Source of the DNA: Selaginella moellendorffii
Taxonomy: Eukaryota > Plantae > Lycopodiophyta
Assembly: GCF_000143415.4 (NCBI RefSeq)
Contig: NW_003314290.1
Location: 1,788,454-1,852,453, forward strand
Length of the DNA: 64,000 bases
Direction: 5' to 3'
Below the pieces are notes generated by a model, which had not been told where the DNA came from, did no database searches, and was given only the letters and a program-made list of their open reading frames with translations. Position 1 is the first letter of the stretch. Every line of letters starts with the position of its first letter. Of the stretch, positions 13,298 to 37,040 are shown one piece after another. The translations under genes and the position numbers were made by a program.

Positions 13298-13421
13298 AGC
13301 CAGAGCTTCAAACCCTAGCCGCCAAAGAGTAGAATTTAAATCTGCCACGTATGATACACACGTGGCATACCACGTCAGCTTTTGAGAGGTTTAAATACAT
13401 GGGGCAGAAGAGAGGAGCACC

Positions 13422-15103: not shown

Positions 15104-16194
15104 TTATTCAACAATGGTCAACAGCGGTACAAAGCTAGCGATTTCGTCCAAGACAAGGACGGATTCCTGGCAGCTAGCGTCCCCCACGAGGTAGAATCCA
15201 TGGGAAGAGTTTTCATACTCGATGAGCTTCACGGCATTGCCAGCGTCTTTCAAGATCTTTGCAAACTCTACCTGGCGATCGCGGAGGAGATCCTTGCCGC
15301 CCACCACCACTAGCGCTCTCGGCAGTCCCCTGGCCCCCAATCTCGCGAGATCTCCAGGCAATTCCAGCGTCGGGTTGCAAAATGGATGGTCGCGGTCGGC
15401 CGCGCCCTCGGGGAGCGTCGCCAGCCAGCAAAACTCGGTGGTGTCGAGCGTGAGCATCGGTTCGGAGGACCCGAGCCTGAGCTCCGAGTCGGTCCTGGAC
15501 GTGCCTCCATAAAAGGGCTGGAGGAGGATCTGGCCGGTGAGTGGGATTCCATCCTGGTCAGCGCGCAATGCCACGCGGGCTGCGAGATTTCCCCCGGTCG
15601 CCCATGACGAAGATCTTGGAGAAATCCGCGTGAGCGAAAGCGTCTTGATCGCTGCTGCTCTTGGCGATCTGTCGGACCCAGTTGAGAACGTCGTAGCCAT
15701 CGTCATAGGCCGCCGGGAGCCTGTGCTGTTGAGATTAGATGCTCAGGTCGATGCTTAGCTAGGCAGTTAGGATGATGTGGCATTAGGCAGTTGCCACAGC
15801 CCATGTATATATAGCTTCATATATACAATATTTTTTTATCATGTGCTCCGGAGCTAGGCGGTAATTCACAGACACGACGATCGCTTCCAGCTTCCTGGAC
15901 ATGGCCTCGCAAAACTGTGAAAGATCGCATTCGCGGCGCTCACGTAGATGAATCCTCCCCCGTGGTAGAAGATCACGATGGGCAGCGTGCTGCGATTCTC
16001 CAGCTCTTCCGGACGGAAAACTCTCACCCAAATTCCCCGATCCTTGTCGAGAATCACGTCGCGGCTCGCCACGCCGTCTTGGCGGGAACCTCCGCAAAGA
16101 ACCCCGCAGGGCCTGTTGGTGGAGGAGCGCGCACGCAAGATCCATCCTCTACAAACACAAAGCCTCCAATTTGCTTGCGCTCCTCGTCGCCCAT
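15104..16194 (-). pseudogene. CXE pseudogene (array unit A)
   Basis: Near-copy of 20626-21612 with a 5-bp deletion in the GDSAGG codons (~15597), other indels and a 115-bp insertion. Confidence 0.88.
15727..15841. mobile_element. 115-bp solo-LTR-like (TRIM-size) insertion
   Basis: Begins TGTTGA and ends TTATCA (TG...CA); 5-bp TSD TGTGC at 15722-15726 and 15842-15846; absent from the sister CXE copies (empty site cctgtgctccgg). Confidence 0.8.
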
Positions 16195-16458
16195 TCTTTC
16201 GGTGCTAGGTGGGTGGCCTTCCGGTCTCATAACGACACATTTAAATCGTTGAAATGGCCAAGAGCCGGTTTGCGGAAATTCTAAACCTTTCCTTTTCGTT
16301 TCTATGCTGGTATAAAAAAATTCAAATTAAAAGCTCTCTAAGCATTTTATAGGTCTCTTTAATTTAATTAATACTACATACATTAATCTTTTTAACTAAA
16401 CTATTTACTGCTTAGGGCTCGATAATTTAAATTAATACCGTAACTATAAAGCTCCGAT

Positions 16459-17352
16459 ATGGTGGCACAACTCAGGAGAAAGCTCTTGGATGAGTCTGTG
16501 ATTTTGGGTCAAGTTCTCGACAATGTGCAGTGGCAGTACTCGGCCTTATACGGCGTTGTGGACGTCGCTCTGTGCAGGTTAGAACACAGGATCCAGCGGG
16601 TGTGGAGCAATGCCTGCAATCAGGCCAATGTGAGTGAATATGCCGCCACCAAAGCCATTGTCCGCGAGAGGCCGTCATACCTAAGCGACGACAACTTGTG
16701 CTACTACGGTATTTGGGACGACGACCTCACGTACACCAACGTTTGCCTTTGCATCGACAGCTAACAAGAGGAGGCCGACATCGATAGAGGCAGTCCAGGA
16801 AGAGCTCCAGCAGCAGCAGCAGCAGGAGATGCCGTTGCTTAGCTCGCCTCTGATCAAGTACATCAGGGCCAAGCCCAGCATACCCCGTGAGATCCGAGGG
16901 CGTGGCCCGGGATCGCGAAAGTTTCGGCAAGAGCTGGTTTCTTGGGTGGAGCGGGACCTGTTCGGTGGTGTTGGGTCGCTGGACATGCAGGCGCGGCTGG
17001 TGTTTGATGAGCGGATGCTGGCGCACGAGTGGCAGGCGCTGTTCGGTTTCAGGTACTGCAAGTATGAACAGCCGGTGGACAAGGACCTGAGCACGCCTGA
17101 TGTTGTTTTCGATGAAACGTGTGGTTCTTTTGATCACGAGAAGTATGACGAACTTGTCGAGCATCTGGAAGCGGGAAAGATTATCGCGGTGTGTGGTGGC
17201 TTCAACAAGCTTTCCGCTTGGCCGGGGAATGCGTGCGTGGATCTCTTCAACTTTCAAGTGGGGGCGTGGAGGAGCTCATCAAGTGGTACGGTGGGCTCAG
17301 ATTCAAGGTGAATCCGAAGAGAAGACGAGCATATGACCGCAACACCGAATGA
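16459..17352 (+). pseudogene. Orphan family X, copy 1 (frameshifted)
   Basis: Homologous to 22140-23045; 1-bp insertion gives a stop at 16762-16764 and there is a second frameshift near 17265. Confidence 0.82.
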
Positions 17353-17504
17353 ACACAAGTCTTGGTTGGATAGATGGACTTTTGGTAATAGAGTTTGTGT
17401 AGCTTACCTCTTCCTATATGAGATTCATGAGTGATCTTGGACGAAAATATACAACACATACACACACACACACATGGAGCATGATGTCAGCCTTGGTTTA
17501 CATT

Positions 17505-18270
17505 CACAAGCAGCGGTTGCTGGCCAGAGAGAAGCTACGAGAAGAAACCTAGGGAGGCGATCGAGCACTCACTATGAAGTAGCTCATTGAAGAAACTTTC
17601 ATGGCTGATGAAGCATCTTCTGGAAAGTCTCTAAGCCTTCTCGACTTCTAGCAAGCCTTGGATCTCTGGGACAGTGGAAATGTTGATCCCGCAAAGACCA
17701 GTAGAACGTTTGCTGGTGATGTGATCGTCACCGCGTGGTTGAGGTTGGTTTGTTACCACGAAAAAACCCCTCTTGTCAGTGAAAAACCCATTGTTGCCTT
17801 TGTTAAAATGCTTACTTTGCCAAGTTGATGGACTCGAGGCTTGTGCTCGTCCAGAAGATCTACAAGTTTTTTGGGCTCACACTATGCTGAGTTTGATTTT
17901 CCACAAAGAGCATTCTATGTTGCCAAATCTTTTATCTTAGCACCATTGTCAAGATCTCTTTTGCTTCACCCTCCAGAGTGCACTTCTCAAATTAGTAAGC
18001 CATTGGTTCTCAACAATGCAAATGCTAGACAGATGTTAAGTATGCTTCCACATTGCACTATTCAAATTTGGTCGAGCTTTGGCTCTCTTAACAAGGCCAA
18101 CTCCTACTTTCTTGCGTGACCAGAAATGTTTTGCTGAACGAGGAACGTCCCCTATGCCACTTAGATCTAGCCCATCATCTTGTCCATGTCAGTGTCAGAG
18201 CTTGGATTACATAACAACAGATTTCTCTAGTCCCTAGCTCCTTTTCCTCTGCCACCATCATCACCACAAC
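17505..18270. other. Gene-fragment segment M: R3HCC1L 3' end + abridged reverse cysteine protease + degenerate PPR N-terminal fragment
   Basis: 17505-17573 matches 43508-43570. gatcgtcaccgcgtggttgaggt is the reverse complement of 55604-55626 (DLNHAVTI). The minus strand of the sister copy at ~28000-28200 reads QCGSMLSARLAFALLRARNL. Copies at 27620-28280 (+) and 30130-30840 (-). Confidence 0.75.
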
Positions 18271-19560
18271 AGTGAGTGCTCAATCGCCTCCCCAGGTTTC
18301 TTCTCGCAGCTTCTCTCTGGCCAGCAACCGCTGCTTGTGCTCCTTCTTCTCCTGGACCGTGAATCTCACCTTGTTCTGTGCTCTGTCACGACGATCATAT
18401 GCGTTGAGCAGCTTGGGCGGATGTCGGAGGCTCCAAGTCTATACGAAGAGTGGCCGATCAGAAAAAGGCTTGAAACCAGAGAAAGAAAACTGGATATCTC
18501 TCTGCCGTGAACTTCGCTTGAATCAAGATGGGCGATAGATGGTTGCTCGCGCTGCGCAAAAAATGATTAGCGTCAGTGAAGATGTTTGCTTTGTCTAGCC
18601 AAACCGATCGTTGGATTGCCATAAACAGACAAGGCAGTGGTACTACCATTTACCCAGCGAATCACCACGCCACATTTGATCATCCAAAGAGAGACGAACT
18701 TACCGGACTTTCCATCGATGTCGTCAGAAGACGTAGTGAGCTCCTCGTGAGTTTCATCGTCCATGGCGGTCGTATGATCACTGTGGAATCCATCTCTTTC
18801 TCTTCCGTATGTAAATGCCCCGCGTCCACGCTGCTTGGGAGCTACGTCTTCGGCCTCCTCCTCTGCGGTTTCTCTCGCGTTTTCTCTGGAGTTGGAGCAA
18901 CGCTTGGGAGTTGAATTGCACAAAGAAAGTTGGGAGAATCGAAGAGGGAGCTGTGGTGGCTTTGATCGTGAGCTGCTTTCTCCCGCAAAGAAAACTTTCA
19001 AAGCTCCGCTATCCTTCCTCTTCGTCATCTTCCTTTTCTACGCTTGGAGCATTGCTTCTTCTTGCTATGTACGCGTTTAATCTGTGCCGGATGACAATGG
19101 CGGAGCTGCGCAGCGAAGCGGCCTTAGCCCTGCCGCTCGTACAGCGGCCCGATTCGCGACCCGATTGCACGTCCAGAGATATTAGGGTTCTTGAGAGAAG
19201 CGCCTAAAAAACATTTCAATGACGCCAAGCAATGGCAGCTCGATTCGATGCCTTCCAAGCGCTCCAAAGCGCACTGGCAAAAACGCCCGACACGAGATTG
19301 ACGCGGTGATGTGGGGGTAGTAGAAAATCTAGAAACCCGTTTTCGTTGGGGCGTGGATCCTTTTGTGGATTCGTCTTGGAACGGGAAGGCGGCGGCTGGA
19401 ATTGGATCATCGGTAGCTGCTGCTTGCGAGCTGGGGGGAGCCTTAAGAGCCCTAAACCTCAAGAAAGTGATGGTTACAAGGCGATTCGAACCGCGACGCG
19501 TTTGGAATTTTCGGGAGTGCGAGCCCGCGACTGGCGGCGACACGTCAACTCTCTCAAACC
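18271..19560 (-). other. Gene-fragment mosaic (unit B): abridged PhyH 3' repeat, PhyH 5', Q-rich gene, DRP1 3' end, PPR 5' end and R3HCC1L
   Basis: Reverse-complement matches to 5060-5220, 6191-6235, 6360-6575, 7334-7420 and 42126-43570. Confidence 0.85.
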
Positions 19561-20338
19561 AGTTTCGCCACGAATCCATTCCATTCCGTTCTCCAAGATT
19601 GATAGCTGCATTGTAGTGATTTTTGCTCTCGCTCGATCAATCGTGACGTCCCCAACCCAGGGGGAACGACTTCAGCTATGAACAGCTAAAGGGATTTTCC
19701 GGGCGGTGATTCGTTACTCTTTTGTGTGTTTGCATTGAATCTACACAGGGCGTGTATGCCGAGGGAGGACGAACATTCCTGCTCTCGGACGTTGGGCCCC
19801 AGGGCTGCATCCCATACTTCCTCACAAATTTCCCAGTTCTCCAAGTGAGCTACGATCAAGCCAGGTGCGCTATCGAATTCAACCAAATCACGCAGCACTA
19901 CGATGAAATGAGATGAGATGTCATTCTGTTTTGCTAGTCTTGATTGTTCAAGTAGGCTTTGAGCAACCTCCGTAACCAGCTCCCAGACAGCACTATAATC
20001 TACATCAACACTTACGACATAAAATACTCCCTCACCCCAAGCAAGAACATAGCCGGTCAACGTGTTTCTGGCCATAGTTGACTTTACAGGATTCCAGTTT
20101 GCCAACAAGGCCTGCTGTGGGATTGGAGGGAACTACAACTACAACTTTGCGGTGCAATGTGGGCAGAGCAAAGTGATGGCTGGGAAGACGGTGGTGTCAA
20201 CGACTTGTAAGAATCCATCTGCGTATCTCAATTGGGATGGAGTTCACAACACCAAAGCAGCAAACCGGATCATCATGAGGGAGCTTCTTTGAGCCCAGTT
20301 TCCCCTTGGGCATCCTGTGCGCACTCAAGAACGTCTAA
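19560..20338 (+). pseudogene. GDSL 3' remnant (unit B)
   Basis: Matches 13880-14854, including intron sequence, with deletions; GVYAEGGRTFL, KACCGIGGNYNYNF. Confidence 0.88.
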
Positions 20339-20625
20339 TAATTTGTTTGGATTCATAAACTTTGATGAACATCAATCCGTTGGTCCATTGTTCCACTACA
20401 ACCATTGTTCTTTTGGATCCAATCCAGCACCCATCACCGGTTGGAAGGGAATGTGCAGTGGAATGAGAAAAGGCTGCCTGATGACACCGCAAAGACAAAA
20501 GGAAGAAATGCAATCCTCGTGAATGGCTGCCAAAGCTTGTGTACCGTGACCTCTGACCGCCAGTCAACCCGTAAGTCAACCGAGTCAGCTTTATTCAACG
20601 CGGGTCCACAGCGGTTAGCCAGGGG

Positions 20626-21612
20626 TCACTCTCGCAAGAAGCTAGCGATTTCGTCCAAGACAAGGACGTATTCCTGGCAGCTAGCGTCCCCCACGGCGTA
20701 GAATCCATGGGAAGCGTTTTCATAGTCGATGAGCTTCACGGCATTGCCAGCGTCTTCCAAGATCCTTGCAAACTCTACCTGGCGATCGTAGAGGAGATCC
20801 TTGCCGCCCACCACCACTAGCGCTCTCGGCAGTTCCCCGGCCCCCAACCTCGCGAGATCTCCCGGAAATTCCAGCGTCGGGTTGCAAAATGGATGATCCC
20901 GGTCGGCCGCGCCCTCGGGGAGCGTCGCCAGCCAGCAGAAATCGGTGGTGTCGAGCGTGATCATCGGATTGGAGGACCCGAGCTTGAGCTCCGACTCGGT
21001 CCTGGACGTGCCTCCATAGAAGGGCTGGAGGAGGATCTGGCCGGCGAGCGGGATTCCATCCTGGGCAGCGCGCAATGCCACTCGGGCTGCGAGATTTCCC
21101 CCGGCGCTGTCGCCCATGACGAAGATCTTGGAGAAATCCGCGTGAGCGAAAGCGTCTTGATCGCTGCTGCTCTTGGCGATCCCTCGGACCCATTTGAGGG
21201 CGTCGTAGCCATCGTCGTAGGCCGCCGGGAGCCTGTGCTCCGGAGCTAGGCGGTAATTCACAGACACCACGATCGCTCCCAGCTTCCTGGACAGGGCCTC
21301 GCAAAATCTGTGAACGATCGCATTCGCGGCGCTCAAGTAGATGAATCCTCCCCCGTGGTAGAAGATCACGATGGGCAGCGTGCTGCGATTCTCCAGCTCT
21401 TCCGGACGGAAAACTCTCACCCACAGTCCCCGATCCTTGTCGAGAATCACGTCGCGGCTCGCCACGCCGTCAATGAACGAGGGATTGGCGGGAACCTCCT
21501 CAAAGAACCCCGCAGGGCCTGTTGGTGGAGGAGTGCGCACGTAAGATCCATCCTCTGCGAACACAAAGCCTTCAATTTGCTTGCCGGAGCTCTTGCGCTC
21601 CTCGTCGCCCAT
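20626..21612 (-). CDS. Carboxylesterase (CXE), intact array copy (unit B)
   Basis: ATG at 21612 (MGDEERKSSG); HGGGF, GDSAGG, KDLL, NASHGF; uninterrupted ORF. Confidence 0.92.
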   Translation of the reverse strand: MGDEERKSSGKQIEGFVFAEDGSYVRTPPPTGPAGFFEEVPANPSFIDGVASRDVILDKDRGLWVRVFRPEELENRSTLPIVIFYHGGGFIYLSAANAIVHRFCEALSRKLGAIVVSVNYRLAPEHRLPAAYDDGYDALKWVRGIAKSSSDQDAFAHADFSKIFVMGDSAGGNLAARVALRAAQDGIPLAGQILLQPFYGGTSRTESELKLGSSNPMITLDTTDFCWLATLPEGAADRDHPFCNPTLEFPGDLARLGAGELPRALVVVGGKDLLYDRQVEFARILEDAGNAVKLIDYENASHGFYAVGDASCQEYVLVLDEIASFLRE

Positions 21613-22139
21613 TCTTTCGGTGCTAGGTGGGCGGCCTTCCGGTCTCACAACCACACATTTAAATCGTTGAAATGGCCAAGAGCGTGACTTGTCGGTTTGC
21701 AGAAATTCTAAAGCTTTCCTTTTCGTTTCTACGCTGGTATGAAAAAAAAATCAAATTAAAATCTCTCTAAGAATGTTTAAGCTTTTCTACTTAGGGCTCT
21801 TTAAGTTAATTAATACTACATAACTAAACATACTTAATCACAACGACTAATCTTTGTAACTGAGCATCGTGCCCTAAAGCTCTCCCAGGATATGGCGGCA
21901 CAGCTCAGGAGAGCGTTGGATGAGTCTGGATCTAGTACTGGACAATCTGGGTCTTTTTTGTGGAAGATCTCACCAATAGCTTTTCCTTTGCTATTCAGCA
22001 GGAAAAGAAAAACAAATGCAAACTAAACATCACATAACACAATGATTTGCTAACTGCCCTGAAAACGGCTTATTTAATCAAATTAAAAGCTCTGATTAAT
22101 CCATTTTAGCTAAACTCACAAAGCATCGTGCCCTAGGAT

Positions 22140-23045
22140 ATGGCGGCACAACTCAGGAGAAAGCTCTGGGATGAGTCTGTGATTTTGGGTCAAGTTCTCG
22201 ACACTCTGGGTCACAGGCAGTGGCAGTACTCGGCCTTCTACAGCGCTGTGGAGTTCGCTCTGTGCAGGTTAGAACACAGGATCCAGCGGGTGTGGAGCAA
22301 TGCCTGCAAGCAGGCCAATGTGAGAGAATACGCCGCCACCAACGCCATCGTCCGGGAGAGGCTGTCGTACCTAAGCGACGATGAGTTGTGCTACTACGGT
22401 ATTTGGAGTGACGACCTCACTTACACCAACGTTCGCCTTTGCGTCGACAGCTACAAGAGGAGGCCGACATCGATAGAGGCAGTCCAGGAAGAGCTCCAGC
22501 AGCAGCAGCAGCAGCAGGAGATGCCGTTGCTTAGTCCACCTCTGATCAAGTACATCAGGGCCAAGCCCAGCATACCCCGTGATATCCGAGGGCGTGGCCC
22601 GGGATTGCAAAAGTTTCGGCAAGAGCTGGTTTCTTGGGTGGAGCGGGACCTGTTCGGTGGTGTTGGGTCGCTGGAGATGCAGGCGCGGCTGGTGTTTGAT
22701 GCGCGGGTGCTGGCGCACGAGTGGGAGGAGTTGTTCGGTTTCAGGTGCTGCGAGTATGAGCTGCTGGTGGACAAGAACCTGAGCACGCCTGATGTTGTTT
22801 TCAATGAAAATTGTGGTCCTTTTGATCAGGAGAAGTATGACAAACTTGTCGTGCAGCTGGAAGCGGGAAAGATGATCGCGGTGTGTTGCGGCTTCAACAA
22901 GCTTTCCACTTGGCCAGGGAATGCATGTGTGGATCTCTTCAACTTTCAAGTGGGGGGTGTGGAGGAGTTGATCAAGCGGTACGGTGAGCTCAGGTTTAAG
23001 GTGAATCCCAAGAGAAGACGAGCATATGACCGCAACTCCGAATGA
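22140..23045 (+). CDS. Orphan family X, intact copy (301 aa, intronless, unknown function)
   Basis: ATG-to-stop ORF with five homologous copies elsewhere in the window; internal poly-Q and C-terminal PKRRR; no domain recognised. Confidence 0.75.
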   Translation: MAAQLRRKLWDESVILGQVLDTLGHRQWQYSAFYSAVEFALCRLEHRIQRVWSNACKQANVREYAATNAIVRERLSYLSDDELCYYGIWSDDLTYTNVRLCVDSYKRRPTSIEAVQEELQQQQQQQEMPLLSPPLIKYIRAKPSIPRDIRGRGPGLQKFRQELVSWVERDLFGGVGSLEMQARLVFDARVLAHEWEELFGFRCCEYELLVDKNLSTPDVVFNENCGPFDQEKYDKLVVQLEAGKMIAVCCGFNKLSTWPGNACVDLFNFQVGGVEELIKRYGELRFKVNPKRRRAYDRNSE

Positions 23046-24250
23046 ACACAAGTCTTGGTTGGATAGATGGACTTTGGTAATAGAGTTTGTGTAGCTTACC
23101 TCTTCCTATATGAGATTCATGATCTTGGACGAAAATTTACAACACACACACACACACGGGGAGCTAGCGCAGTAATGGAGCCGAGGCTACCACAACCAGG
23201 GTGGCCCTCAGGCTTCTTTTCTTGCGAAGAAGAGCCTTCTGTGTCAATTTTTCTGGAGTGAGATGGCCTTGCTCGGCTCTGTCGACATAGAGATGTCCAT
23301 ATGATCTTTTCTGGCATGCTGCCAACCACTGAGTTTTCCTCAGCTCCGATATCCAGCCATCGACCGTTGCATAGCGATGATCCTTCTCGTGCTGGATGCT
23401 GTTATCGACGACTGAGGTCTTGTCCGCCGACAATGTCGTTTGGCCTGCTAAGAGCATGCACTTGAAATGGCCAGCATCGAGTTCCAGTAAACCAAGATCT
23501 TGGTTTCGAAGCTTTATGCTTGGGCACAGGGACAGTGCTCGGTCGATGTTGACGCAGGAGACGATGTTCTTCTCCGAGTGCATGCTCTTGGACGGTAGCA
23601 GGCCAAGCGACATTGTCGGCGGTTGCCTGGACAAGACCTCAGTCGTTGATCACAGCGTCCAGCACGAGAAGGATCATCTCTATGCAATGGTTGATGGCCG
23701 GTTATCGGAGCTGATGAAAACTCAGTGGTTGGCAGCATGCCAGAAAAGATCATATGGACATCTCTACGTCAACAGAGCCGAGCAAGGCCATCTCACTCCA
23801 GAAAAATTGACGCAGAAGGCTCTTCTTCGCAAGAAAAGAAGCCTGAGGGCCACCCCAGTTGTGGTAGCCTTGGCTCCATTACCACGCTAGCTCCGTGTTG
23901 TAAATTTTCGTCCAAGATCACTCATGAATCTCATATAGGAAGAGGTAAGCTACACAAACTCTATTACCAAAGTCCATCTATCCAACCAAGACTTGTGTTC
24001 ATTCGGTGTTGTGGTCATATGCTTGTCTTCTCTTGGGATTCACCTTGAATCTGAGCTCACCGTACCGCTTGATCAGCTCCTCCTCACCCCCCACTTGAAA
24101 GTTGAAGAGATCCATGCATGCATTCCCCAGCCAAGCAGAAAGCCACCACACGCCACGATCATCTTTCCCGCTTCCAGATGCTCGACAAGTTCGTCATACT
24201 TCTCCTGATCAAAAGGACCACACTTTTCGTCAAAAACAACATCCGGCATA
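22786..24250. repeat. Inverted repeat at the B/C junction: arms ~22786-23462 and ~23575-24250 around a PPR-derived spacer
   Basis: Arms are reverse complements, e.g. ggccctcaggcttcttttcttgcgaagaagagcc (23204) vs ggctcttcttcgcaagaaaagaagcctgagggcc (23818). Confidence 0.9.
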
Positions 24251-24259
24251 GGAAGAGCT

Positions 24260-24290
<31 letters not shown>

Positions 24291-24840
24291 CGGCAGGAGA
24301 TGCCGTTGCTTAGCCTGCCTCTGATCAAGTACATCAGGGCCAAGCCCAGCATACACTGTGAGATCCGAGGGCGTGGCCCGGGATCACGAAAGTTTCGGCA
24401 AGAGCTCGTTTTTTGGGTGGAGCTGGACCTGTTTGGTGGTGTTGGGTCGCTGGAGATGCAGGCGTGGCTGGTGTTTGATGCGCGGGTGCTGGCGCATGAG
24501 TGGGAGGAGTTGTTCAGTTTCAGGTGCTGCGAGCATGAGCCACTGGTGGACAAGAACCTGAGCCTCCTCTTGTAGCTGTCGACGCAAAGGCAAACGTTGG
24601 TGTACGTGAGGTCGTCGCTCCAAATACCTTCGTAGCACAAGTCATCACTCAGGTACAAGGGCCTCTCGCAGATGACGGCCTTGGCAACGGTGTATTCACT
24701 CACACTAGCCTACTTGCATGCATTGCGCCACACCCGCTGGATCCTGTGCTCTAACCTGCACAGAGCAAACTCCACAACGCCATAGAAGCCCGCATACTGC
24801 CACTGCCTGTAACCACCCAAAATCGCAGATTCTCCAGAGC
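23998..24840 (-). pseudogene. Orphan family X, scrambled copy (unit C) with an internal re-inversion
   Basis: 3' part at 23998-24250 (-), middle at 24251-24562 (+), 5' part at 24563-24840 (-). Confidence 0.85.
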
Positions 24841-25052
24841 TTTTTAAGTATGTAGTTATTAATTAAATTAAGTATTTAAGTAGACAAGCTAAAACATGCT
24901 TAGAGAGCTTTTAATTAGTTTTTTTTTAATTATGTGTATATTAGAAACGAAAAAGAAAGCTTTAGAATTTCCGCAAACCGACAAGTCGGGCATTTCAATG
25001 ATTTAAATGTGTCGTTGTGAGACCGGAAGGCCCACCCACCTAGCACCGAAAA

Positions 25053-26018
25053 ATGGGCGACGAGGAGCGCAGAGCTCTGGCAATCAAATTGGAGGCTTTG
25101 TGTTTGCAGAGGATGGCTCTCCACCAACAGGCCCTGCGTGGTTCTTTGCGGAGGTTCCCGCCAATCCCGCGTCCATTGACGGCGTGGCGAGCCGCGACGT
25201 GATTCTCGACAAGGATCGGGGACTTTGGGTGAGAGTTTTCCGTCTGGAAGAGCTGGAGAACCGCACGCTGCCCATCGTCATCTTCTACCACGGGGGAGGA
25301 TTCGTCTACATGAGCGCCGCGAATGCGATCTTTCACAGATTTTGCGAGGCCCTGTCCAGGAAGCTGGGAGCGATCGTGGTGTCTGTGAATTACCGCCTAG
25401 CTCCGGAGCACAGGCTCCCGGCGGCCTACGACGATGGCTACGACGCCCTCAACTGGGTCCGAGAGATCGCCAAGAGCAGCAGCGATCAAGACGCTTTCGC
25501 TCACGCGGATTTCTCCAAGATCTTCGTTATGGGCGACAGCGCCGGGGGAAATCTCGCAGCCCGCGTGGCATTGCGCGCTGCCCAGGATGGAATCCCGCTC
25601 GCCGGCCAGATCCTCCTCCAGCCCTTCTATGGAGGCACGTCCAGGACCGAGTCGGAGCTCAGGCTGGGTCCTCCGACCCGATGATCACGCTACGCATCAC
25701 CGATTTTTGCTGGCTGGCGGCGCTCCCCGAGGGAGCGGTCGACCGCGATCATCCATCTTGCAACATGACGCTGGAATTACCTGGAGATCTCGCGAGATTG
25801 GGGGCCAGGGGACTGGCGAGAGCGCTAGTGGTGGTGGGCGGCAAGGATGTCCTCCACGATCACCAGGTAGAGTTTGCAAAGATCTTAGAAGACGCTGGCA
25901 ATGCCGTGAAGCTCATCGAGTATGAAAACGCTTCCCATGGATTCTACCTCGTGGGGACGATAGCTGCCAGGAATCCGTCCTTGTCTTGGACGAAGTCGCT
26001 AGCTTCTTGCGAGAGTGA
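25053..26018 (+). pseudogene. CXE pseudogene (inverted unit C)
   Basis: Reverse-complement homologue of 20626-21612 with frameshifts near 25072, 25665 and 25957. Confidence 0.87.
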
Positions 26019-26300
26019 CCCCTGGCTTGCCGCTATTGACCCGCGTTGAATAATGTTGACTATGTTTACTGACGGGTTGACTGGCGGTCAGAGCTGACGG
26101 GATTGGATGTACACAAGCTTTGGCAGCCATTCACGAAGATGGCATTTCTTCCTTTTGTCTTTGCGGTGTCACCAGGCAGCCTTCTCTCATTCCACTGCGC
26201 ATTCCCTTCCAACCAACAGTGCTTGATGGGTGTTGGATTGGATTCAAAAGAACAATAGTTGTAGTGTTAGATGTTCATCAAAGTTTATGAATCCAAACGA

Positions 26301-27050
26301 TTATATGTTCTTGAGTGTGCACAGCACGCCCAAGGGGAGACTGGGCTCAAAGAAGCTTCCACTCAAGATTTGCCTCGTGATGATCCGGTTTGCTGCTTCG
26401 GTGGATGGATTCTTACAAGTCGTTGACGCCACCGTCTTCCCCACCATCACTTTGCTCTGCCCGCATTGCACCTCAAAGTTGTAGTTGTAGTTCCCTCCAA
26501 TCCCGGTGGCAAACTGGAATCCTGTAAAGTCAACTATGGTCAGAAACACGTTGACAGCCTATGTTCTTGCTTGAGGGTGAGCGAGTATTTTATGTCGTAA
26601 GTGTTGATGTAGATTATAGTGCTGCCTGGGAGCTGGCTATGGAGGTTGCTTTCAAAGCCTGCTTGAACAATTAAGACTAGCGAAACAGAATGACATTTTA
26701 TCTCATTTCATTGTAGTGCTGCATGACTTGATAGCGCACCCGGCTTGATCGTAGCCCACTTGGAGTTTGTGAGGGAGTATGGGATGCAGCCCTGGGGCCC
26801 AACGTACGAGAGCAGGAATGCTCGTCCTCCCTCGCCATTGAATCTGTGTAGATTCAATGCAAACACACAGAAGAATAAAGAATCACTTCCCGGAAAATGT
26901 ATGCCTTTAGCTGTTCATAGCTGAAGTCGTTCCCCCTGCGTTGAGAGAGTTCCCTGGGACATCACGATTGATCGAGCGAGAGCAAAAATCACTACAATAT
27001 AGCTATCAATCTTGGAGAACGGCATGGAATGGATTCGTGGCGAAACTAAT
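26301..27050 (-). pseudogene. GDSL 3' remnant (unit C)
   Basis: GNYNYNFEVQCGQSKVM...RQILSGSFFEPS on the minus strand. Confidence 0.87.
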
Positions 27051-27059
27051 TTGAGAGAG

Positions 27060-28280
27060 AGGTGGTCGTGGACGGGTGACGTGTCACCGCCGGTCGCGGA
27101 CTCGAATCCGGCCCACTCCCGAAAATTCCAAACGCGTCGCGGTTTGAATCGCCTTCCTTGTAACCATCATTTTCTTGAGGCTCTTCAAAGTTCAAATTCC
27201 TCGTGCCGTTCCGCATCAACGAAGAGCAGCGCCATCGCAAGCAGCAGCAGCTACCGATGATCCAATACCGATGATCCAATTCCAGCCGGCGCCTTCCCGT
27301 TCCAAGACGAATCCACAAAAGGATCCACGCCCCAACGAAAACGGGTTTCTAGATTTTCTACTTCCCAGTGCGCTTTATTGCTTGGCGTCATTGAAATGTT
27401 TTTTTAGCGCTTCTCGCAAGAGCCCTAAAATCTCAGCTATGGTGGCACAGTTTTTGCAGGGACGAAGAAGAAGGATACCGGAGCTTTGAGAGTTTTCTTT
27501 GCGGGAGAAAGCCGCTCACGACAACCCTGCATCAAAGCCACCACAGCTCCCTCCTTATAGACTTGGAGCCTCTGACATCCGCCTACAAGGAGATTCACGG
27601 TCCAGGAGAAGGAGGAGCACAACCAGCGGTCGCTGGCCAGAGAGAAGCTGCGAGAAGAAACCTGGGGAGGCAAGTGAGCACTCACAATGAAGTAGTCAAT
27701 TGAAGAAACTTTCGTGGCCAATGAAGAGTCTTCTGGAAAGTCTCTAGGCCTTCTTGACTTCTGGCAAGCCTTGGATCTCTGGGATGGTGGACATGTTGAT
27801 ACTGCAAAGACTAGTAGAACGTTTGCTGGTGATGCAATCGTCACCCCGTGGTTGAGTTTGGTTTGAAAAACCCCTCTTTGTTAGTGAGAAACCCATTGTT
27901 GCCTTTGCTAAAACGCTTACTTTGCCTGCCAAGTTGACACACTTGAGGCATTTGCTTGTCGAGAAGATCTGCAAGTTTTCTGGGCTCACACTATGCAAGA
28001 GCATTCCATGTTGCCGGATCTCTCATCCCAGCACCACCGTCAAGATCTCTCTTGCTCCGCCCTCCAAAGTGTGCTTCTCAAGTTGACAAGTTGCGGGCTC
28101 TTAGCAATGCAAAGGCTAGACGGGCGCTTAGCATGCTTCCACACTGCACTACTCAAGTTTGGATGAGCTTTGTCTCTCTCAGCAAGGCCAACTCCCATCT
28201 TATTTGATGCAATAGGGGGCAGGAGCTTTCTTGGGTGACCGAAGAAGCTTTGCTGGATGAGGAAGCCCCCTGTGCTGTAG
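27060..28280 (+). other. Gene-fragment mosaic plus segment M (unit C)
   Basis: In order: 27068-27160 = 5050-5222; 27165-27185 = 6191-6235; 27230-27325 = 6322-6575; 27342-27366 = 7334-7358; 27377-27444 = 42150-42216; then abridged R3HCC1L, protease and PPR pieces. Confidence 0.85.
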
Positions 28281-28284
28281 ACAT

Positions 28285-29996
28285 TAATTATGCATAGCCA
28301 TACTAAGTATGCATGGGAGCTTTTTTTGGCAATGAAAATAAAAGATCAAACAACATGGAACACAATCATAACTGCATTTGCTCAAGAAGGGCATTTTTGC
28401 GAAACTGCAAAAGTTCAAGACAAAATGCCTAATCTGAGGGGGGCATTTGCTCCATATCAATTCTGGACCAATTGTAAACTTGGGACATGTGCTCTGTGCT
28501 TTTACAGCATTTTAGAGTGGGGAACTAAACACATATTTGAAGTTGTACAGCAAAATCTTGTTACAATGTATTGAGTTTCTCATCCAAATGTGGTGGCCCT
28601 TGCTTCCCAAGACCCCAACTCGTCACTTGAAGAATACTTTGTGAAAACCAGAATGCAAGATGTTAAAGGAGTTCACGAGATTCTCATCAATGGAAATTCT
28701 CCAACAAACCAAAAGGAAGCCGCAAAGGTTTGGAGTTTCTCTATGGCCATTGGTCCACTGCAATTTGTGGGAAGAACCTACGATTTAAACTAATCACGTT
28801 GAAAAGATTACAATTCTATAGACTCTTTTTTGCTCATTGTGTGGAAGCCTTGGAAGGCCGTGGAAACACAAGTTCTTTTTTTTATAAGATCAAACCAAAG
28901 CATGCTAGGGTGGGAAAGGATGTACTTAAAAAGATTGAGCACTGGGAATCCCATGGTAAACTTCCAGACGAAGTTCGGGGATTGGCAAAACCCTATTGCA
29001 AGATCTGTCTAATGATGGGCAAGCTCTTGCTGTAAGCCTGCTTGCTTGACCTTGTGTTTGACAACATCCTGAAATAGCCCAGGCTCCAAGCATCGAGTTC
29101 TAGTAAACCAGGATCTTGGTTTCGAAGCTTTACGCTCGGGCACAGGGACAGTGCTTGGTCGACGTTGACGCAGGAGACAATGTTCTTCTCTGGGATGCTG
29201 TCAAACACAAGGTCAATGATCATCATGTTCCAAGCAAGCAAGCTCATAGCAAGAGCTTGCCCACCACTAAACAAATCTTGCAATAGGCCTCTGCCAATCC
29301 TTGAATTTCGTCTGGAAGTTTACTATAGGATTCCTAATGCTCAATCTCTTTAAATGCATCTTTTCCCACCCTAGCATGCTTTGGTTAATTGTTATAAAAA
29401 AAAGAACTTGTGTTTCCACGGCCTTCCAAGGCTTCCACACAATGAGCAAACAAGAGTCTCTACAATCATAGTCTTCTCAATATCATTAGTTTGAATTGTA
29501 GGTTCTCCCCACAAATTGCAATGGACCAATAGCTATAGAGAAACTCTAAAGCCTTTGCGGCTTTCTCTTGGTTTGCTGGAGAATTTCCATTGATGAGAAT
29601 CTCGTGAACTCCTTTAACATCTTGCATTCTGGTTTTCGCAAAGTATTCTTCAAGTGACCATTTGGGGTGTCGGGAAGCAAAAGCCACCACATTTGGATGA
29701 GAAACTCAATACATTGTAACAAAATCTTGCTGTATGGTTTCAAATATGCACTTAGTTCCCCACTTTAGAATGTTGTAGAAGCATAGAGCACATGTCCCAA
29801 GTTTACAATTGATCTAGAATTGATATAGAGTAAATGCCCCCCTCAGCTTAGGCATTTTGTCTTGAACTTGTGCAACTTTGTAAAAATGCCCTTCCTGGGA
29901 AATGCAGTCATGATTGTGTTCCATGTTGTTTGATCTTTTTTTTTTTTTGCCAAAAAAAGTTTCCATACATACTTAGTATAGCTATGCATAATTAGT
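28285..29996. repeat. Inverted repeat at the C/D junction: ~800-bp arms (28285-29069 and 29191-29996) around a PPR-derived spacer
   Basis: The arms encode matching peptides on opposite strands (DQTTWNTI, KTRMQDVKGVHEILINGNSP, LIVWKPWKAVETQVLFFI). Confidence 0.92.
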
Positions 29997-30129
29997 GTTT
30001 GCAGCACAAAATTCCAAACCCGAATGGGTTTGAAACCGATCATTCTCATGTTTTTCATCACATTTTGCAGATTCCCATTTTGGACATCTGCAAATACATA
30101 AATAATCCATGTCACAAAATTTTGGTCAC

Positions 30130-32170
30130 TCCACCATGTTTGTTGCTACTGCTGCAGTGATGAGAGAGGAAGAGGAGGAAGAAACTTGTTGCTCTAATCT
30201 CGTCTGCAACACCGACATGGATGAGACAGTGGGCTAGATTTGAGCGGCATAGGGGGGCTTCCTTGTCCAACAAAGCATCTCTAGTCACACAAGAAAGCTC
30301 CTGCCCCCTGCTACATCAGATAGAATGGGAGTTGGCTTTGTTAAGAGAAACAAAGCTCATCCAAGCTTGAGTAGTGCAATGTGGAAGCATACTTAACACC
30401 CATCTGGCCTTTGCATTGTTGAGAGCTTGTGACTTGCTAACTTGAGAAGCACACTCTGGAGGGCGGAGCAAAAGAGATCTTGATGCTAGTGCTGGGTTGA
30501 GAAATCCAGCAACATGGAACACTCTTCCATGGCGTGAGCCTAGAAAAGTTGCAGATTTTCTTGACGAGCAAATGCCTTGAGTGCGTAGATTTGGCAAAGT
30601 AGGGGTTTTAGCAAAGGCGACAATGGGTTTCTCAGTGACAAAGAGGGGTTTTTTCGTGGTAACAAACCAACCTCAACCACGCGGTGACAATCGCATCACC
30701 AGCAAACGTTCTACTGGTCTTTGCAGTATCAACATGTCCTCCGTCCCAGAGATCCAAGGCTTGCCAGAAGTCAAGAAGTAGAGACTTTCCAGAAGACGCT
30801 TCATCGGCCACGAAAGTTTCTTCAATCGACTACTTCATAGTGAGTGCTCACTCGCCTCCACAGGTTTCTTCTCGCAGCTTCTCTCTGGCCAGCAACCGCT
30901 GCTTGCGCTCCTCCTTCTCTTGGACCGTGAATCTCACCTTGTTCTGTGCTCTGTCACGACGATCATATGCGTTGAGCAGCTTGGGCGGATGTCGGAGGCT
31001 CCAAGTCTGTACGAAGAGTGGCCGATCAGAAAAAGGGCTTGAAACCAGAGAAAGAAAACTGGATACCTCTCTGCCGTGAACTTCGCTTGAATCAAGATGG
31101 GCGATGGATGGTTGCGAGTGCCCCTCGCGCTGCGCAAAAAATGATTAGCGATCAGTGAAGATGTTTGCTTTGTCTAGCCAAACCGATCGTTGGATTGCCA
31201 TAAACAGCCAAGGCAGTGGTACTATCATTTACCCAGCGAATCACCACGTCACGGCTCGCGCGGATTCAATCAAAAGAATGCTAAGAACTTCCACATTTGA
31301 TCATCCAAAGAGAGACGAACTTACCGGACTTTCCATCGATGTCGTCAGAAGACGTAGTGAGCTCCTCGTGAGTTTCATCATCCATTGCGGTCGTATGGTC
31401 GCTGTGGAATCCATCTCTTTCTCTTCCGTAAGTAAATGCCACGCTGCTTCGGAGCTACGTCCTCGGCCTCCTCCTTTGCGGTTTCTCTGGAGTTGGAGCA
31501 ACGCTTGGGAGTTGGATTGCACAAAGAAAGTTGGGAGATTCGAGGAGGGAGCTGTGGTGGCTTTGATGAACTCCCAGGGATGTCGTGAGCGGCTTTCTCC
31601 CGCAAAGAAAACTTTCAAAGCTCTGCTATCCTTCCTCTTCGTCGCCTTCCTTTTCTACGCTTGGAGCATTGCAAAGAAATTCCTGAGAACACTCATGCGA
31701 CGTACGCGTTTAATCTGTGCCGGATGACAATGGCGGAGCTGCGCAGCCAACCGGCCTTAGCCCTGCCGCTCGTACAGCGGCCCGATTCGCGACCCGATTC
31801 GATTCGCTCTGCATCTCGTCCACACTGTGCCCTTCAGTTCTTCACCATATTATAGCTGAGACTTTAGGGTTCTTGAGAAAAGCGCCAAAAAAACATTTCA
31901 ATGACGCCAAGCAATGGCAGCTCGATTCGATGCCTCCAAAGGGGAAGTAGAAAATCTAGAAACCCGTTCTCGTTGGGGCGTGGATCCTTTTGTGGATTCG
32001 TCTTGGAACGGGAATTGGATCATCGGCTGCTTGCGATGGGGATTGGTGGAATTTGAAGAGCCCTAAACCTCAATAAAATGATGGTTACACGGAAGGCGAC
32101 GCGTTTGGAATTTTCGGGAGTGGGCCGGATTCGAGCCCGCGACCGGCGGTGCGTCCACGGCCACATCTCT
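30130..32170 (-). other. Segment M plus gene-fragment mosaic (unit D)
   Basis: Reverse complement of 27060-28280; 30840-32170 parallels 18271-19560 and keeps R3HCC1L intron sequence. Confidence 0.85.
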
Positions 32171-32764
32171 CTCAAACCAGTTTCGCCACATTCCATTCTC
32201 CAAGATAGCTATATTGCAGTGATTTTTGCTCTCACTCGATCGATCATGATGTCCCAGGGAACTCTCTCAACGCAGGGGGAACGACTTCTCCAAGTGAGCT
32301 ACGATCAAGCCGTCTAATTCAACCAAGTCACGCAGCACTACAATGAAATGAGATGAGATGTCATTCTGTTTTACTAGTCTTGACTGTTCAAGCAGGCTTT
32401 GAGCAAATTTGTAGCAAGCTCCCAGGCAGCACTATAATCTACATCAACACTTACGACATAAAATACTCCCTCACCCTCAAGCAAGAACATAGGCGGTCAA
32501 CGTGTTTCTGACCATAGTTGACTTTACAGGATTCCAGTTTGCCAACAAGGGAACTACAACTACAACTTTGAGGTGCAATGCGGGCAGAGCAAAGTGATGG
32601 CTGGGAAGATGGTGGCATCAACGACTTGTAAGAATCCTCTCAATTGGGATGGAGTTCACTACAACGAAGCAGCAAGCTGGATCATCACGAGGCAAATCTT
32701 GAGTGGGAGCTTCTTTGAGCCCAGTTTCCCCTTGGGCATGCTGTGCACACTCAAGAACATCTAA
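32170..32764 (+). pseudogene. GDSL 3' remnant (unit D)
   Basis: QCGQSKVMAGK...WDGVHYNEAAS...LCTLKNI; upstream exons largely deleted. Confidence 0.87.
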
Positions 32765-33029
32765 TAATCTGTTCATAAACTTTGATGAACATCGATCACT
32801 ACAAACATTGTTCTTTTGCATCCAATCCAGCACCCATCAAGCACTGCTGGTTGGAAGGGAATGTGGAATGAGAAAATGCTGCCTGATGACACCGCAAAGA
32901 CAAAAGGAAGAAATGCCATCCTGGTGAATGGCTGCCACAGCTTGTGTACCGTGAGCTCTGACCGCCAGTAACCCCTAAGTCAACAGAGTCCACTTTATTC
33001 AACGCGGGTTCACAGCGGTCAGCCAGGGG

Positions 33030-34016
33030 TCACTCTCGCAAGAAGCTAGCGATTTCGTCCAAGACAAGGACGGATTCCTGGCAGCTAGCGTCCCCCACGG
33101 CGTAGAATCCATGGGAAGCGTTTTCATACTCGATGAGCTTCACGGTATTGCCAGCGTCTTCTAAGATCTTTGCAAACTCTACCTGGCGATCGTGGAGGAG
33201 ATCCTTGCCGCCCACCACCACTAGCGCTCTCGCCAGTCCCCTGGCCCCCAATCTCGCGAGATCTCCCGGCAATTCCAACGTCGGGTTGCAAAATGGATGA
33301 TCGCGGTCGGCCGCGCCCTCGGGGAGCGTCGCCAGCCAGCAAAAATCGCTGCTGTCGAGCGTGATCATCGGATTGGAGGACCCGAGCCTGAGCTCCGACT
33401 CGGTCCTGGACGTGCCTCCATAGAAGGGCTGGAGGAGGATCTGGCCGGCGAGCGGGATTCCATCCTGGGCAGCGCGCAATGCCACGCGGGCTGCGAGATT
33501 TCCCCCGGCGCTGTCGCCCATGACGAAGATCTTGGAGAAATCCGCGTGAGCGAAAGCGTCTTGATCGCTGCTGCTCTTGGCGATCCCTCGGACCCATTTG
33601 AGGGCGTCGTAGCCATCGTCGTAGGCCGCCGGGAGCCTGTGCTCCGGAGCTAGGCGGTAATTCACAGACACCACGATCGCTCCCAGCTTCCTGGACAGGG
33701 CCTCGCAAAATCTGTGAAAGATCGCATTCGCGGCGCTCATGTAGATGAATCCTCCCCCGTGGTAGAAGATCACGATGGGCAGCGTGCTGCGATTCTCCAG
33801 CTCTTCCGGACGGAAAACTCTCACCCACAGTCCCCGATCCTTGTCGAGAATCACGTCGCGGCTCGCCACGCCGTCAATGAACGAGGGATTGGCTGGAACC
33901 TCCTCAAAGAACCCCGCAGGGCCTGTTGGTGGAGGAGTGCGCACGTAAGATCCATCCTCTGCAAACACAAAGCCTCCAATTTGCTTGCCGGAGCTCTTGC
34001 GCTCCTCGTCGCCCAT
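33030..34016 (-). CDS. Carboxylesterase (CXE), intact array copy (unit D)
   Basis: ATG at 34016; same motifs as 20626-21612, differing at only about a dozen residues. Confidence 0.92.
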   Translation of the reverse strand: MGDEERKSSGKQIGGFVFAEDGSYVRTPPPTGPAGFFEEVPANPSFIDGVASRDVILDKDRGLWVRVFRPEELENRSTLPIVIFYHGGGFIYMSAANAIFHRFCEALSRKLGAIVVSVNYRLAPEHRLPAAYDDGYDALKWVRGIAKSSSDQDAFAHADFSKIFVMGDSAGGNLAARVALRAAQDGIPLAGQILLQPFYGGTSRTESELRLGSSNPMITLDSSDFCWLATLPEGAADRDHPFCNPTLELPGDLARLGARGLARALVVVGGKDLLHDRQVEFAKILEDAGNTVKLIEYENASHGFYAVGDASCQESVLVLDEIASFLRE

Positions 34017-34352
34017 TCTTTCGGTGCTAGGTGGGTGGCCTTCCGGTCTCACAACCACACATTTAAATCGTTGAAATGGCCAAGAGCGTGACTTGTCGGT
34101 TTGCGGAAATTCTAAAGCTTTCCTTTTCGTTTCTAGGCTGGTACATAATTAAAAAAAAATCAAATTAAAAGCTCTCTAAGAATGTTTAAGCTTTTCTACT
34201 TAGGGCTCTGTAAGTTAATTAATACTACATAGATTAATCTTTTTAACTAAGGCTCTTTAATTTAAATAGCACTAAGGAAGAAAAAAAAAAGAGAAAAAAA
34301 GAAAAAGAGAACCCATACTTAATCAAAACGACTAATCTTTGTAACTAAACTC

Positions 34353-35214
34353 GGTGGCACAGCTCAGGAGACAGTTGGATGAGACTGATTTTGGGTCTAG
34401 TACTGGACAATCTAGGTCACAGGCACTATGCGGGCTTCTATAGTGTTGTGGACTTCACTCTGTGCAGGTTAGAACACAGGATCTAGCGGGTGTGGAGCAA
34501 TGTGGCCAATGTGAGTGAACCATTGTCCGCGAGAGGCCGTCGTACCTAAGTGACGACAACTTGTGCTACGAAGGTATTTGGGATGACGACCTCACTTGTG
34601 CTACAAAGGTATTTGGGATGACAACCTCACGTACACCAATGTTCGCCTTTGCGTCGACAGCTACAAGAGGAGGCCGACATCGATAGAGGCAGTCCAGGAA
34701 GAGCTCTAGCAGCAGCAGCAGCAGGAGATGCCGTTGCTTAGTCCGCCTCTGATCAAGTACATCAGGGCCAAGCCCAGCATACCCCGTCCCCGGGATCGTG
34801 AAAGTTTCGGCAAGAGCTGGTTTCTACCTGTTCGGTGGTGTTGGGTCGCTGGACATGCAGGTGCGGCTGGTGTTTGATGCGCGGATGCTGGCGCACGAGT
34901 GGCAGGCGCTGCTCGGTTTCGGGTGCCTCTCGTATGAATCACTGGTGGACAAGGATCCGAGCACACCGGATGTTGTTTTCGACGAACACTATGGCCCTTT
35001 TGTTCAGGAGAAGTACGACGAGCTTGTCAAGGACCTGGAAGCGGAAAAGATGATCGCGGCGTGTGGTGGCTTCAACAAGCTTTCCGCTTGGCTGGGGAAT
35101 GCGTGTGTGGATCTCTTCAACTTTCAGGTGGCGGACGTGGAGGAGCTCATCAAGCGGTATAGTGAGCTCAGATTCAAGGTGAATCCCAAGAGAAGACACC
35201 GCAACACCAAGTGA
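34353..35214 (+). pseudogene. Orphan family X copy (unit D), decayed
   Basis: Start codon lost, in-frame stops, 35-bp tandem duplication at ~34559-34628 and deletions. Confidence 0.83.
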
Positions 35215-35383: not shown

Positions 35384-36135
35384 GGAAGACGCTGCATTTG
35401 AGAGTGACAAAAGTTTCTTCGTCTACTTCAGCAACTCAGGCTTCTTCTCGCAGCTTCTCTGTGGCCAGTTGTTCCAGGGCCGACCTTGGTCTGTGCTCTG
35501 CCAACGATGCTTTGGTTTTTGAGAGCTCCGACGATCATTCGCAGAGACGCTCTACAAAGAGCCGCTCTGTAAACGGAGAAACCTCTCTCGGTGAAAAGGC
35601 CGTGAACTTCGCTTGAATAGTCGTAAGTTTTCAGCAGGCGGGCCTCTCGTGCTGCGCAAGGAAAGAAAAGAAATTATTTGCGTCAGTAAAGATGTTTGCT
35701 TTGTCTAGCAAAACCAATTGTCGGATTGCTGAAAACTGCCTATTCCCAGCGAGTGGTCCGCTCCACCCAAGAAACCAGCTCTTCTCTGTGGCTTTCCAAC
35801 CACTCGAGATTTGAGCCAGCTCTCCAAATCTCGAGTGGTTGGAAAGCCACAGAGAACCAAAACATAGCTAGCTCAAAAGAAAAAAAATACCAAACAAAGA
35901 CTTCCAGCTTTGCAGAGAGAGACGAACTTACCGCACTTTCCATCGAGTCGTAGGGCTTTAGACTCCACAGCGACCATACGGCCGCCATGGACGATGAAAT
36001 TCACGAGGATGGCCACGCTGCTTGGGAGCTAACGTCCTCGTCCTCCTCGCGGCTCTCTGTGAATCAAAGAAACTTTCTTCTTTAGCGAAAAAAAAGAGAT
36101 GGCCGCGCCCTGGAAACTACGCAGCGCCATACGCG
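35384..36135 (-). pseudogene. Abridged, scrambled R3HCC1L remnant
   Basis: caggcttcttctcgcagcttctct, gagagctccgacgatcat and agagagacgaacttac are reverse complements of 42930-43552; cacagcgaccatacggccgccatggacgatgaaa (35967) is in forward orientation. Confidence 0.75.
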
Positions 36136-36164: not shown

Positions 36165-37040
36165 ATGGCGATTCCTTCTGCATGCACTTTAGGGCTCCAG
36201 GGATGGCGACGCAGCTGCTCAAGCAAAAGCTCTTGGGACGGGGATTTGGGGTCAAGTTCTAGACAATTTTGGCAGTATGATGGCTTCTACGGCGTTGCAG
36301 ACTTGGCTCTGCGCAGGCTAGACCACAGGATCCAGCAGGTTTGCAGGTCAGGTGTGAGTGAATATGCAGCCATCAATGCCATTGTCCGCGAGAGGCCATC
36401 GTACCTCAGCCATGACGTTCTACGAAGGTATTTGGAACGACGACCTCACTTTGTTAACGTTCGCCTTTGCGTCGACAGCTACAAGAGGAGACCAACGTCG
36501 ATCGAAGCAGTCCAGGAAGAGGCAAGAACAGCAGGACTGTTTAGCCCGCCTCTGATTAAGTACATCAGGGCCAAGCCCAGCATACCCCGCCAGATTCGAG
36601 GGCGTGGCCCGGGATCGAGAAAGTTTCAGCAAGAGGTGGTCTCTTGGGTGGAGCGGGACTTGTTCGGTGGTGCTGGATCGCTGGAGATGCAGGCGCGGCT
36701 GGTGTTTGATGTGCGGATGCTGACGCACGAGTGGCAGGCGCTGCTCGGTTTCGGGTGCTTCTCGTATGAATCGCTGGTGGACAAGGATCCGAGCACACCG
36801 GATGTTGTTTTCGACAAACACTATGGCCCTTTTGTTCAGGAGAAGTACGACGAGCTGGTCGAGGACCTGGAAGCGGGAAAGATGATCACGGCATGTGGTG
36901 GCTTCAACAAGCTTTCCGCTTTGCTGGGGAATGCATGCGTGGATCTCTTCAACTTTCAGGTGGGGGAGCTCATCAAGCGGTATGGTGAGCTCAGATTCAA
37001 GGTGAATCTCAAGAGAAGACGAGCTCATGATTGCGACTAA
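36165..37040 (+). pseudogene. Orphan family X copy: open 291-aa frame with frameshifted segments
   Basis: The ancestral ATG (~36203) is out of frame; HDVLRRYLERRPHF replaces DDELCYYGIWSDDLTY; the rest aligns with 22140-23045. May still be coding. Confidence 0.65.

Follow-up and report, generated by a model that had tools for sequence, protein, structure and literature searches.

The 64,000-nucleotide stretch of DNA from the spikemoss Selaginella moellendorffii analysed here (the window) contains an array of repeated cassettes that carries short pieces of the genes flanking it on both sides, and the question that this locus raises is how such pieces came to lie, in the order of their sources, inside the array. 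An earlier note on this DNA had offered two answers, either that a large stretch was duplicated locally and then pared down by successive deletions, or that templates were switched locally in several steps. Gene content was assigned by Pfam searches of single ORFs or exons, queried one by one and not as joined spliced models (Table 1). Each gene of the flanks is today present in exactly one intact copy. The name R3HCC1L, previously proposed for one of them, is backed solely by weak RRM-like matches in this single-ORF search, and the gene is referred to here as R3H-like. Neither ARAGORN nor Rfam detected a tRNA or known RNA in the window. They were likewise blank in the 3′ repeat of the PhyH gene, which holds GGTTCGAATC-like motifs resembling a tRNA T-arm or B box. 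Downstream of PhyH lies a 78-bp tandem repeat of 1.8 copies (5075-5218), of which the mosaics described below carry a single unit.

Table 1. Positions of the genes, mosaic copies, source pieces and related features within the window.
Feature	Position	Strand	Remark
PhyH gene	~5145-6223	-	Pfam on ORFs
Q-rich ORF	from ~6106	+	
Dynamin-related gene (DRP1)	stop 7340-7342	-	Pfam on ORFs
Three diverged carboxylesterase genes (Abhydrolase_3), left flank	10152-13348		Pfam
Complex array	~13.9-37.1 kb		
Carboxylesterase genes or remnants	10152-13348, 15104-15706, 20626-21654, 25007-26049, 33030-34058		
RRM gene	~37.7-38.1 kb		Pfam
PPR gene	40422-42164	-	Pfam
R3H-like gene	ATG 42212, stop 43565	+	
Paralogue of the 301-aa ORF	44750-45544		right of the R3H-like gene
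Two PPR genes, F-box gene, papain-like protease gene			further right of the R3H-like gene
Older inverted paralogue of 43318-43750	55599-56140	-	~71-76% identity; outgroup to polarise changes
Mosaic v1	18271-19567	-	source 43573 down to 5034; sole copy retaining 7358-7394
Mosaic v2	27060-27690	+	most eroded full copy; orientation as sources
Collinear continuation of v2 beyond the R3H-like stop	27609-27863	+	source 43497-43750
Mosaic v3	30848-32160 (30665-32160 with downstream continuation)	-	mirror arm of v2
Partial copy v4	35437-36058	-	R3H-like part alone; early branch
Partial fragment X1	17505-17750	+	R3H-like tail and downstream sequence
Divergent 70-85-nt stretch	17574-17650, 27675-27755, 30770-30850		compared with source 43575-43640
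Centre of the palindrome uniting v2 and v3	29049-29230		spacer originating from PPR gene sequence, 50866-51021
Source piece: PhyH 3′/downstream region	5033-5144	+	includes first unit of the 78-bp tandem repeat
Source piece: PhyH start-codon region	6185-6243	+	
Source piece: 5′ part of Q-rich ORF	6322-6330, 6359-6410	+	
Source piece: inside Q-rich ORF	6548-6597	+	96.8% identity in all three copies
Source piece: last ~26 codons of DRP1 (gene on -), stop and 7 nt of 3′ flank	7333-7420	+	34.7-kb jump begins at its right end
Source piece: first ~23 PPR codons (gene on -), shared promoter region, whole R3H-like gene and ~180 nt downstream	42096-43750	+	

Self-BLAST resolved the array into cassettes that each combine a carboxylesterase gene and a 301-aa ORF with a short left module and a tail, and that follow one another in the order forward, forward, inverted, forward. 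The forward-inverted-forward layout extends over 18271-23450 (forward), 23596-27690 (inverted) and 30840-35197 (forward). The pieces of flanking genes form a mosaic that is present in three full copies (v1, v2 and v3) and two partial ones (v4 and X1), drawn as collinear pieces from window positions 5033-7420 and 42096-43750, such that ~38.7 kb of source is shrunk to 0.6-1.3 kb per mosaic. We delineated the pieces by self-BLAST, by word-7 BLAST searches of the window in which the array had been masked, and by a dynamic-programming alignment permitting long gaps in the source. All three recovered the short pieces in the order and on the strand of their sources, in essential agreement with the coordinates first read from the letters alone; the word-7 search had been suggested in the earlier note and was run against the window.

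The pieces match their source at 88-100% identity with E values down to 1e-25 (E of 1e-23 for 5033/5049-5144; 96.8% over 62 nt for 7333-7420), and v1 and v3 are 94.7% identical to each other over 414 nt. The recovered right-hand blocks comprise 42096-42217 and then most of 42275-43573. In v2, the blocks are 5049-5144, 6189-6210, 6363-6410, 6548-6597, 7333-7357, 42149-42217, 42275-42290, 42539-42672, 43336-43371 and 43453-43573. Since each of the three full copies holds at least nine blocks in a single order and on a single strand, for which the probability by chance is ~1/(9! x 2^8), the arrangement is not accidental. The three versions keep different subsets, as had been proposed: 10-12% of the left 2,383 bp is retained per copy (union 16%), and of the right 1,478 bp v1 retains 67%, v3 73% and v2 16%. 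Beyond what the earlier note had described, the analysis revealed the two partial copies, a collinear run that reaches ~43750, and a first array unit (13878-17469) whose left side carries no mosaic. This run also corrects the assignment of the last pieces to a protease gene read in reverse. They are not protease sequence but the collinear continuation 43678-43750, which is better matched by a paralogue beside the protease gene because the source itself has mutated there. Within the continuation of v2, 27760-27784 matches 43678-43702, and the 27 nt at 27837-27863 match 55625-55599, a sequence now found only in this older paralogue.

The mosaic is a DNA-level copy, since introns, promoter and genes of both strands are kept and splice-type junctions are lacking. 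The intron at ~42957-43006 (GTAAGT...TAG) is partially present in v1 and v3 and nearly whole in v4, the last intron (~43310-43352) is whole in v1 and v3, and the divergent promoter region of the PPR and R3H-like genes (intergenic 42165-42211) is retained, which bears out the previous observation that intron bases survive. Short exon-like pieces in one order and on one strand do superficially look like spliced RNA, and a retrocopy could in principle have arisen if a long read-through transcript over the locus had been spliced and then reverse-transcribed. However, when every equivalent placement was scanned, splice dinucleotides (GT..AG, GC..AG and their complements) were found at none of the ~52 junctions (0/~52 with GT..AG or CT..AC ends), the mosaic contains no poly(A) tract, its pieces come from genes on opposite strands, and it still contains promoter and intergenic DNA as well as two introns. 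A spliced-RNA origin is thus ruled out by the lack of splice-type ends at any junction and by the retained introns, and we assign the retrocopy a negligible probability.

Helitrons and Pack-MULEs do bear collinear strings of short gene fragments, and like such elements the mosaic carries fragments of several host genes as one block that has been multiplied. Capture of neighbouring gene fragments by an element of this kind, which then brought them into the array, is nevertheless very improbable. In the surroundings of v1 and v3 no terminal inverted repeats bracket the mosaic, unlike the situation in Pack-MULEs. The only inverted pair near v1, besides a 20-nt, 75%-complementary pair at chance level, is a 69-nt inverted repeat of 96% identity formed by X1 and the end of v1, and X1 is the remnant of a palindrome with a deleted centre. 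Unlike the cargo of Pack-MULEs and Helitrons, the identifiable donors found in the window search are local and keep chromosomal order and strand over 38.7 kb. The right part of the mosaic comprises an almost entire gene, promoter and introns included, and the mosaic has no boundary at either end, grading into the cassette at one and into a palindrome arm at the other. The local origin that had been set against Helitron or Pack-MULE capture is upheld by these findings.

The three full copies v1, v2 and v3 have about 15 gaps in common, including 5145-6184, 6411-6547, 6598-7332, 7421-42095, 42556-42586, 42615-42624, 43485-43496 and a 17-nt gap that takes out the PhyH start codon. About five others occur in v1 and v3 only (42336-42364, 42390-42397, 42677-42689, 43293-43302 and 43422-43447). 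The partial copy v4 keeps 43292-43303 and 43421-43448, which cover the last two of these gaps, as well as most of 42990-43079, stretches that are gone from v1 and v3, and it carries deletions found in no other copy along with a small inversion in its interior (35964-36009 matches 42850-42895). Private gaps number 6-11 per copy, with v2 having lost 42291-42538 and 42673-43335, v1 42210-42309 and 42966-43096, and v3 42990-43079. At 6207-6548 and 7357-7420 the three copies have different, overlapping gaps, and taken together they retain more bases than any one of them does; hence the ancestor held more sequence than any of them. Insertions are few and short, indicating a strong bias to deletion, and, apart from one that today measures 34.7 kb, the deletions are between 8 bp and more than 1 kb long. 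The gaps are nested on the copy tree, and the branching of the mosaics, (v2,(v1,v3)), is in line with how similar the cassettes are to one another (91.9% between unit 1 and unit 3, 86.2% between unit 1 and the inverted unit). The mosaic was therefore co-amplified with the cassette, with ~15 deletions having occurred before amplification and the daughters losing different pieces afterwards.

With moderate confidence, we interpret the mosaic as the deletion-worn relic of one copy that the locus made, at DNA level, of its own flanks. This copy would have extended from ~5033, just downstream of PhyH, through the Q-rich gene, DRP1, the interior and the PPR and R3H-like genes to at least 43750. A fold-back or template-switch rearrangement may have written this inverted copy beside a second cassette as the carboxylesterase array arose, and the copy would have been joined head-to-head to the cassette at ~13878. 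Each gene would then have existed in more than one copy, the redundant ones decaying by many independent deletions, and the relic together with its cassette would later have been duplicated again, in direct and inverted orientation, with each daughter still eroding. The first unit would have undergone an asymmetric deletion of its palindrome centre (17505-18339), the usual fate of palindromes. The relic itself would be non-functional passenger DNA.

The largest gap is the 34.7-kb jump 7420|42096, whose ancestral junction was deduced from v1 and cross-checked against v2 and v3. Position 7420 lies ~26 codons before the DRP1 stop in the last exon, and 42096 falls at PPR codon ~23. As both breakpoints are inside coding sequence and DRP1 and PPR are intact in the flanks, the jump reflects a deletion and not an old adjacency of the two genes, and an ancestral DRP1-PPR neighbourhood was ruled out on these grounds. 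This deletion probably removed far less than the 34.7 kb that the interval measures today, as most of the array would have arisen later. Exact repeats at ~50 junctions, scored for microhomology, average 0.6 nt, which is the chance level. Direct repeats of 4 nt were found at 4 of ~54 junctions (~0.8 expected), all of them small deletions (GAGG at 6207, TCCA at 6383, TTTG at 7394 and CGAC at 43368), which fits slippage or end-joining.

Several observations count against stepwise loss. Every copy has the four large left-part deletions and the 34.7-kb jump, so that these could stem from a single event; at the same node the left part had lost 84% and the adjacent right part less than 25%, which needs a few lucky large deletions; and junction microhomology stays at chance level. 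We also considered whether the patchwork was made in one step, by a nascent strand that repeatedly re-annealed further along the same template in break-induced or microhomology-mediated replication, leaving only the private gaps as later deletions. The large left-part gaps common to every copy would be accounted for in this way, and the forward-inverted-forward array is typical of iterative template switching (PMC11293582, PMC10766183). A patch from the PPR gene at 50.7-51.0 kb sits at both fold-back centres, and fillers of 19-35 nt mark the duplication junctions. The right part, however, began near-complete and eroded stepwise (v4, then v2, then v1 and v3), and the same type of gap keeps appearing privately. 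Moreover, the shared junctions show no microhomology enrichment, none of the at least nine blocks is inverted or out of order, and the stem common to the copies is about as long as the tips in substitutions. A one-step origin of the oldest shared gaps therefore appears unlikely to us, as no observation calls for it, and duplication followed by serial deletion, one of the two readings in the earlier note, is favoured over template switching by the nested deletions and by deletion rates before and after amplification that lie within ~2x of each other.

The older paralogue at 55599-56140 provided the outgroup for this comparison. It sits just after the papain-like protease gene (54717-55350) and contains a micro-inversion of ~45-60 nt (55814-55873, equal to 43638-43698) that is flipped relative to its flanks. 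In ~150 outgroup-polarised coding columns, five substitutions fall on the stem common to the copies and none on the source, and the downstream columns add four to the stem and three to the source. Copies diverge from each other by 4.3% (v1 and v3, 738 columns) and 6.4% (v1 and v2, 171 columns), and from the source by 5.3-7.0%. The common stem, which rests on five or nine sites, would on this reckoning be about as long as the later branches, with deletion counts within about twofold. As an argument of adequacy, this similarity suggests that no burst is needed and that stepwise deletion suffices.

The outgroup also reveals changes on the side of the source. The functional R3H-like gene lacks 14 nt in its last intron (43330-43345) that all array copies and the older paralogue retain, and a downstream piece of ~28 nt is present in the copies and the outgroup and absent from the source (e.g. 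17723-17750, equal to 55626-55599). Hence, the source has lost sequence too. At 17680-17706 the match to 55763-55737 is perfect, the source having since mutated at three sites there. Such source-side loss may, judged from these alignments, account for part of the DNA that has no donor today.

This bears on the previous claim that all identifiable donors lie inside the window. It stands for the identifiable pieces, which are all local, and does not extend to two components without a window donor that also count against stepwise loss, namely the divergent 70-85 nt that follow the stop and ~1.2 kb of each palindrome arm. Directly 3′ of the R3H-like stop, the copies differ by ~45% from the source and from the older paralogue over 70-85 nt, while the flanks on both sides are more than 90% alike, as in a replaced or scrambled segment. 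About 1.2 kb of each arm (27864-29048; mirror 29231-30664) has no counterpart elsewhere in the window, except that the outer edge (~28 nt) matches the older paralogue only, which suggests that the present source has lost that downstream sequence. A donor search across the window for the divergent stretch, 18105-18270, the junction fillers and the hairpin arms returned none for these; its sole match, of 11 nt, shows that the left module of the cassette extends to ~13878 in the first unit.

The array is folded at two centres near 23520 and 29140, each with the PPR-derived patch (23352-23694 and 29076-29208, originating from 50663-51021). The first is a classic fold-back junction, in which the copy runs forward to ~51005 and back on the other strand from ~50826 with a single-copy tip of ~180 nt. 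Around the second, the palindrome spans 24849-34231, its mirror arms 27060-29048 and 29231-32160 are 86-88% identical, and 27590-28270 matches 30935-30253 at 86%. Since the v2 and v3 arms have all old gaps in common, this palindrome is younger than the mosaic. At the head-to-head junction between mosaic and cassette, source ~5033 is joined to ~13878, and where the first cassette meets X1, a (CA)n run is followed by ~30 nt of filler and then by source sequence starting at 43506. At most a few bases are shared at the duplication junctions, and the event is old. In its forward-inverted-forward order of cassette plus mosaic, fold-back junctions with short spacers, head-to-head junction (~5033 minus to ~13878 plus) and junction fillers, the locus resembles inverted triplications (DUP-TRP/INV-DUP), which iterative template switching produces, and the products of origin-dependent inverted-repeat amplification (ODIRA; PMC11293582, PMC4352052, PMC10766183). 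Unlike these, the event here is old, as the modules of the array have diverged by 5-19%, and is overlaid by later duplications and deletions, and the mechanism would be the same only by analogy.

Taken as a whole, the locus is best explained by known, ordinary processes, duplication during array formation followed by deletional decay and co-amplification, and not by a new mechanism. Deletional decay of redundant DNA is reportedly seen in Arabidopsis (Devos et al. 2002). The relic shares with such decay its numerous separate deletions, 8 bp to over 1 kb in size, a few of them with short direct repeats against a chance-level mean over all junctions, the large excess of deletions over insertions, and a progressive, copy-specific loss that is nested on the copy phylogeny. 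Decay by illegitimate recombination or small deletions has been described for plant LTR retrotransposons and pseudogenes in rice (PMC1940013). Unlike in those cases, what decays here is a segmental copy of several genes that lies inside its own source interval and was then co-amplified, and hence five stages of decay can be read beside the intact parent. One multi-gene duplicate at five stages of erosion, with its parent and an internal outgroup at hand, makes the locus a compact, datable record of the rate and step sizes with which redundant DNA is lost in a small-genome lycophyte. It also serves as a warning that collinear short gene fragments inside a repeat unit can mimic transposon capture or exotic template switching, and that mosaic fragments can seed false gene models for PhyH, DRP1, PPR and R3H-like genes.

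Inverted duplications of target genes are said to give rise to young hairpin-RNA and microRNA loci (Allen et al. 2004). The mirror mosaics (27060-29048 and 29231-32160) are gene-derived copies in the same geometry and could form a long hairpin if transcribed. On sequence grounds it is conceivable, and in our view improbable, that they are transcribed, perhaps from the retained copy of the PPR/R3H-like promoter, into a long hairpin RNA whose small RNAs would match five genes of the neighbourhood (PhyH, DRP1, PPR, the Q-rich and the R3H-like gene), which would make the pair a young multi-target locus. If so, the retention of particular pieces would not be purely random. Unlike in young microRNA loci, the arms are kilobases long with pieces of five genes, and the likeness lies in the inverted-repeat geometry alone.

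The cassette genes themselves have relatives on both sides of the array. Seven carboxylesterase (Abhydrolase_3) genes or remnants are found in 24 kb, three of them old flank copies and four array copies, and intact 342-aa esterase ORFs remain in two of the four array copies. The left-flank esterases are just 72-80% identical to those of the array and hence are much older paralogues. The second cassette gene, an ORF of 291-301 aa (22140-23045 and 36165-37040), matched no Pfam family and had no protein-atlas neighbour. Two of its array copies are intact and two are broken, and its paralogue in the right flank is 74-80% identical.
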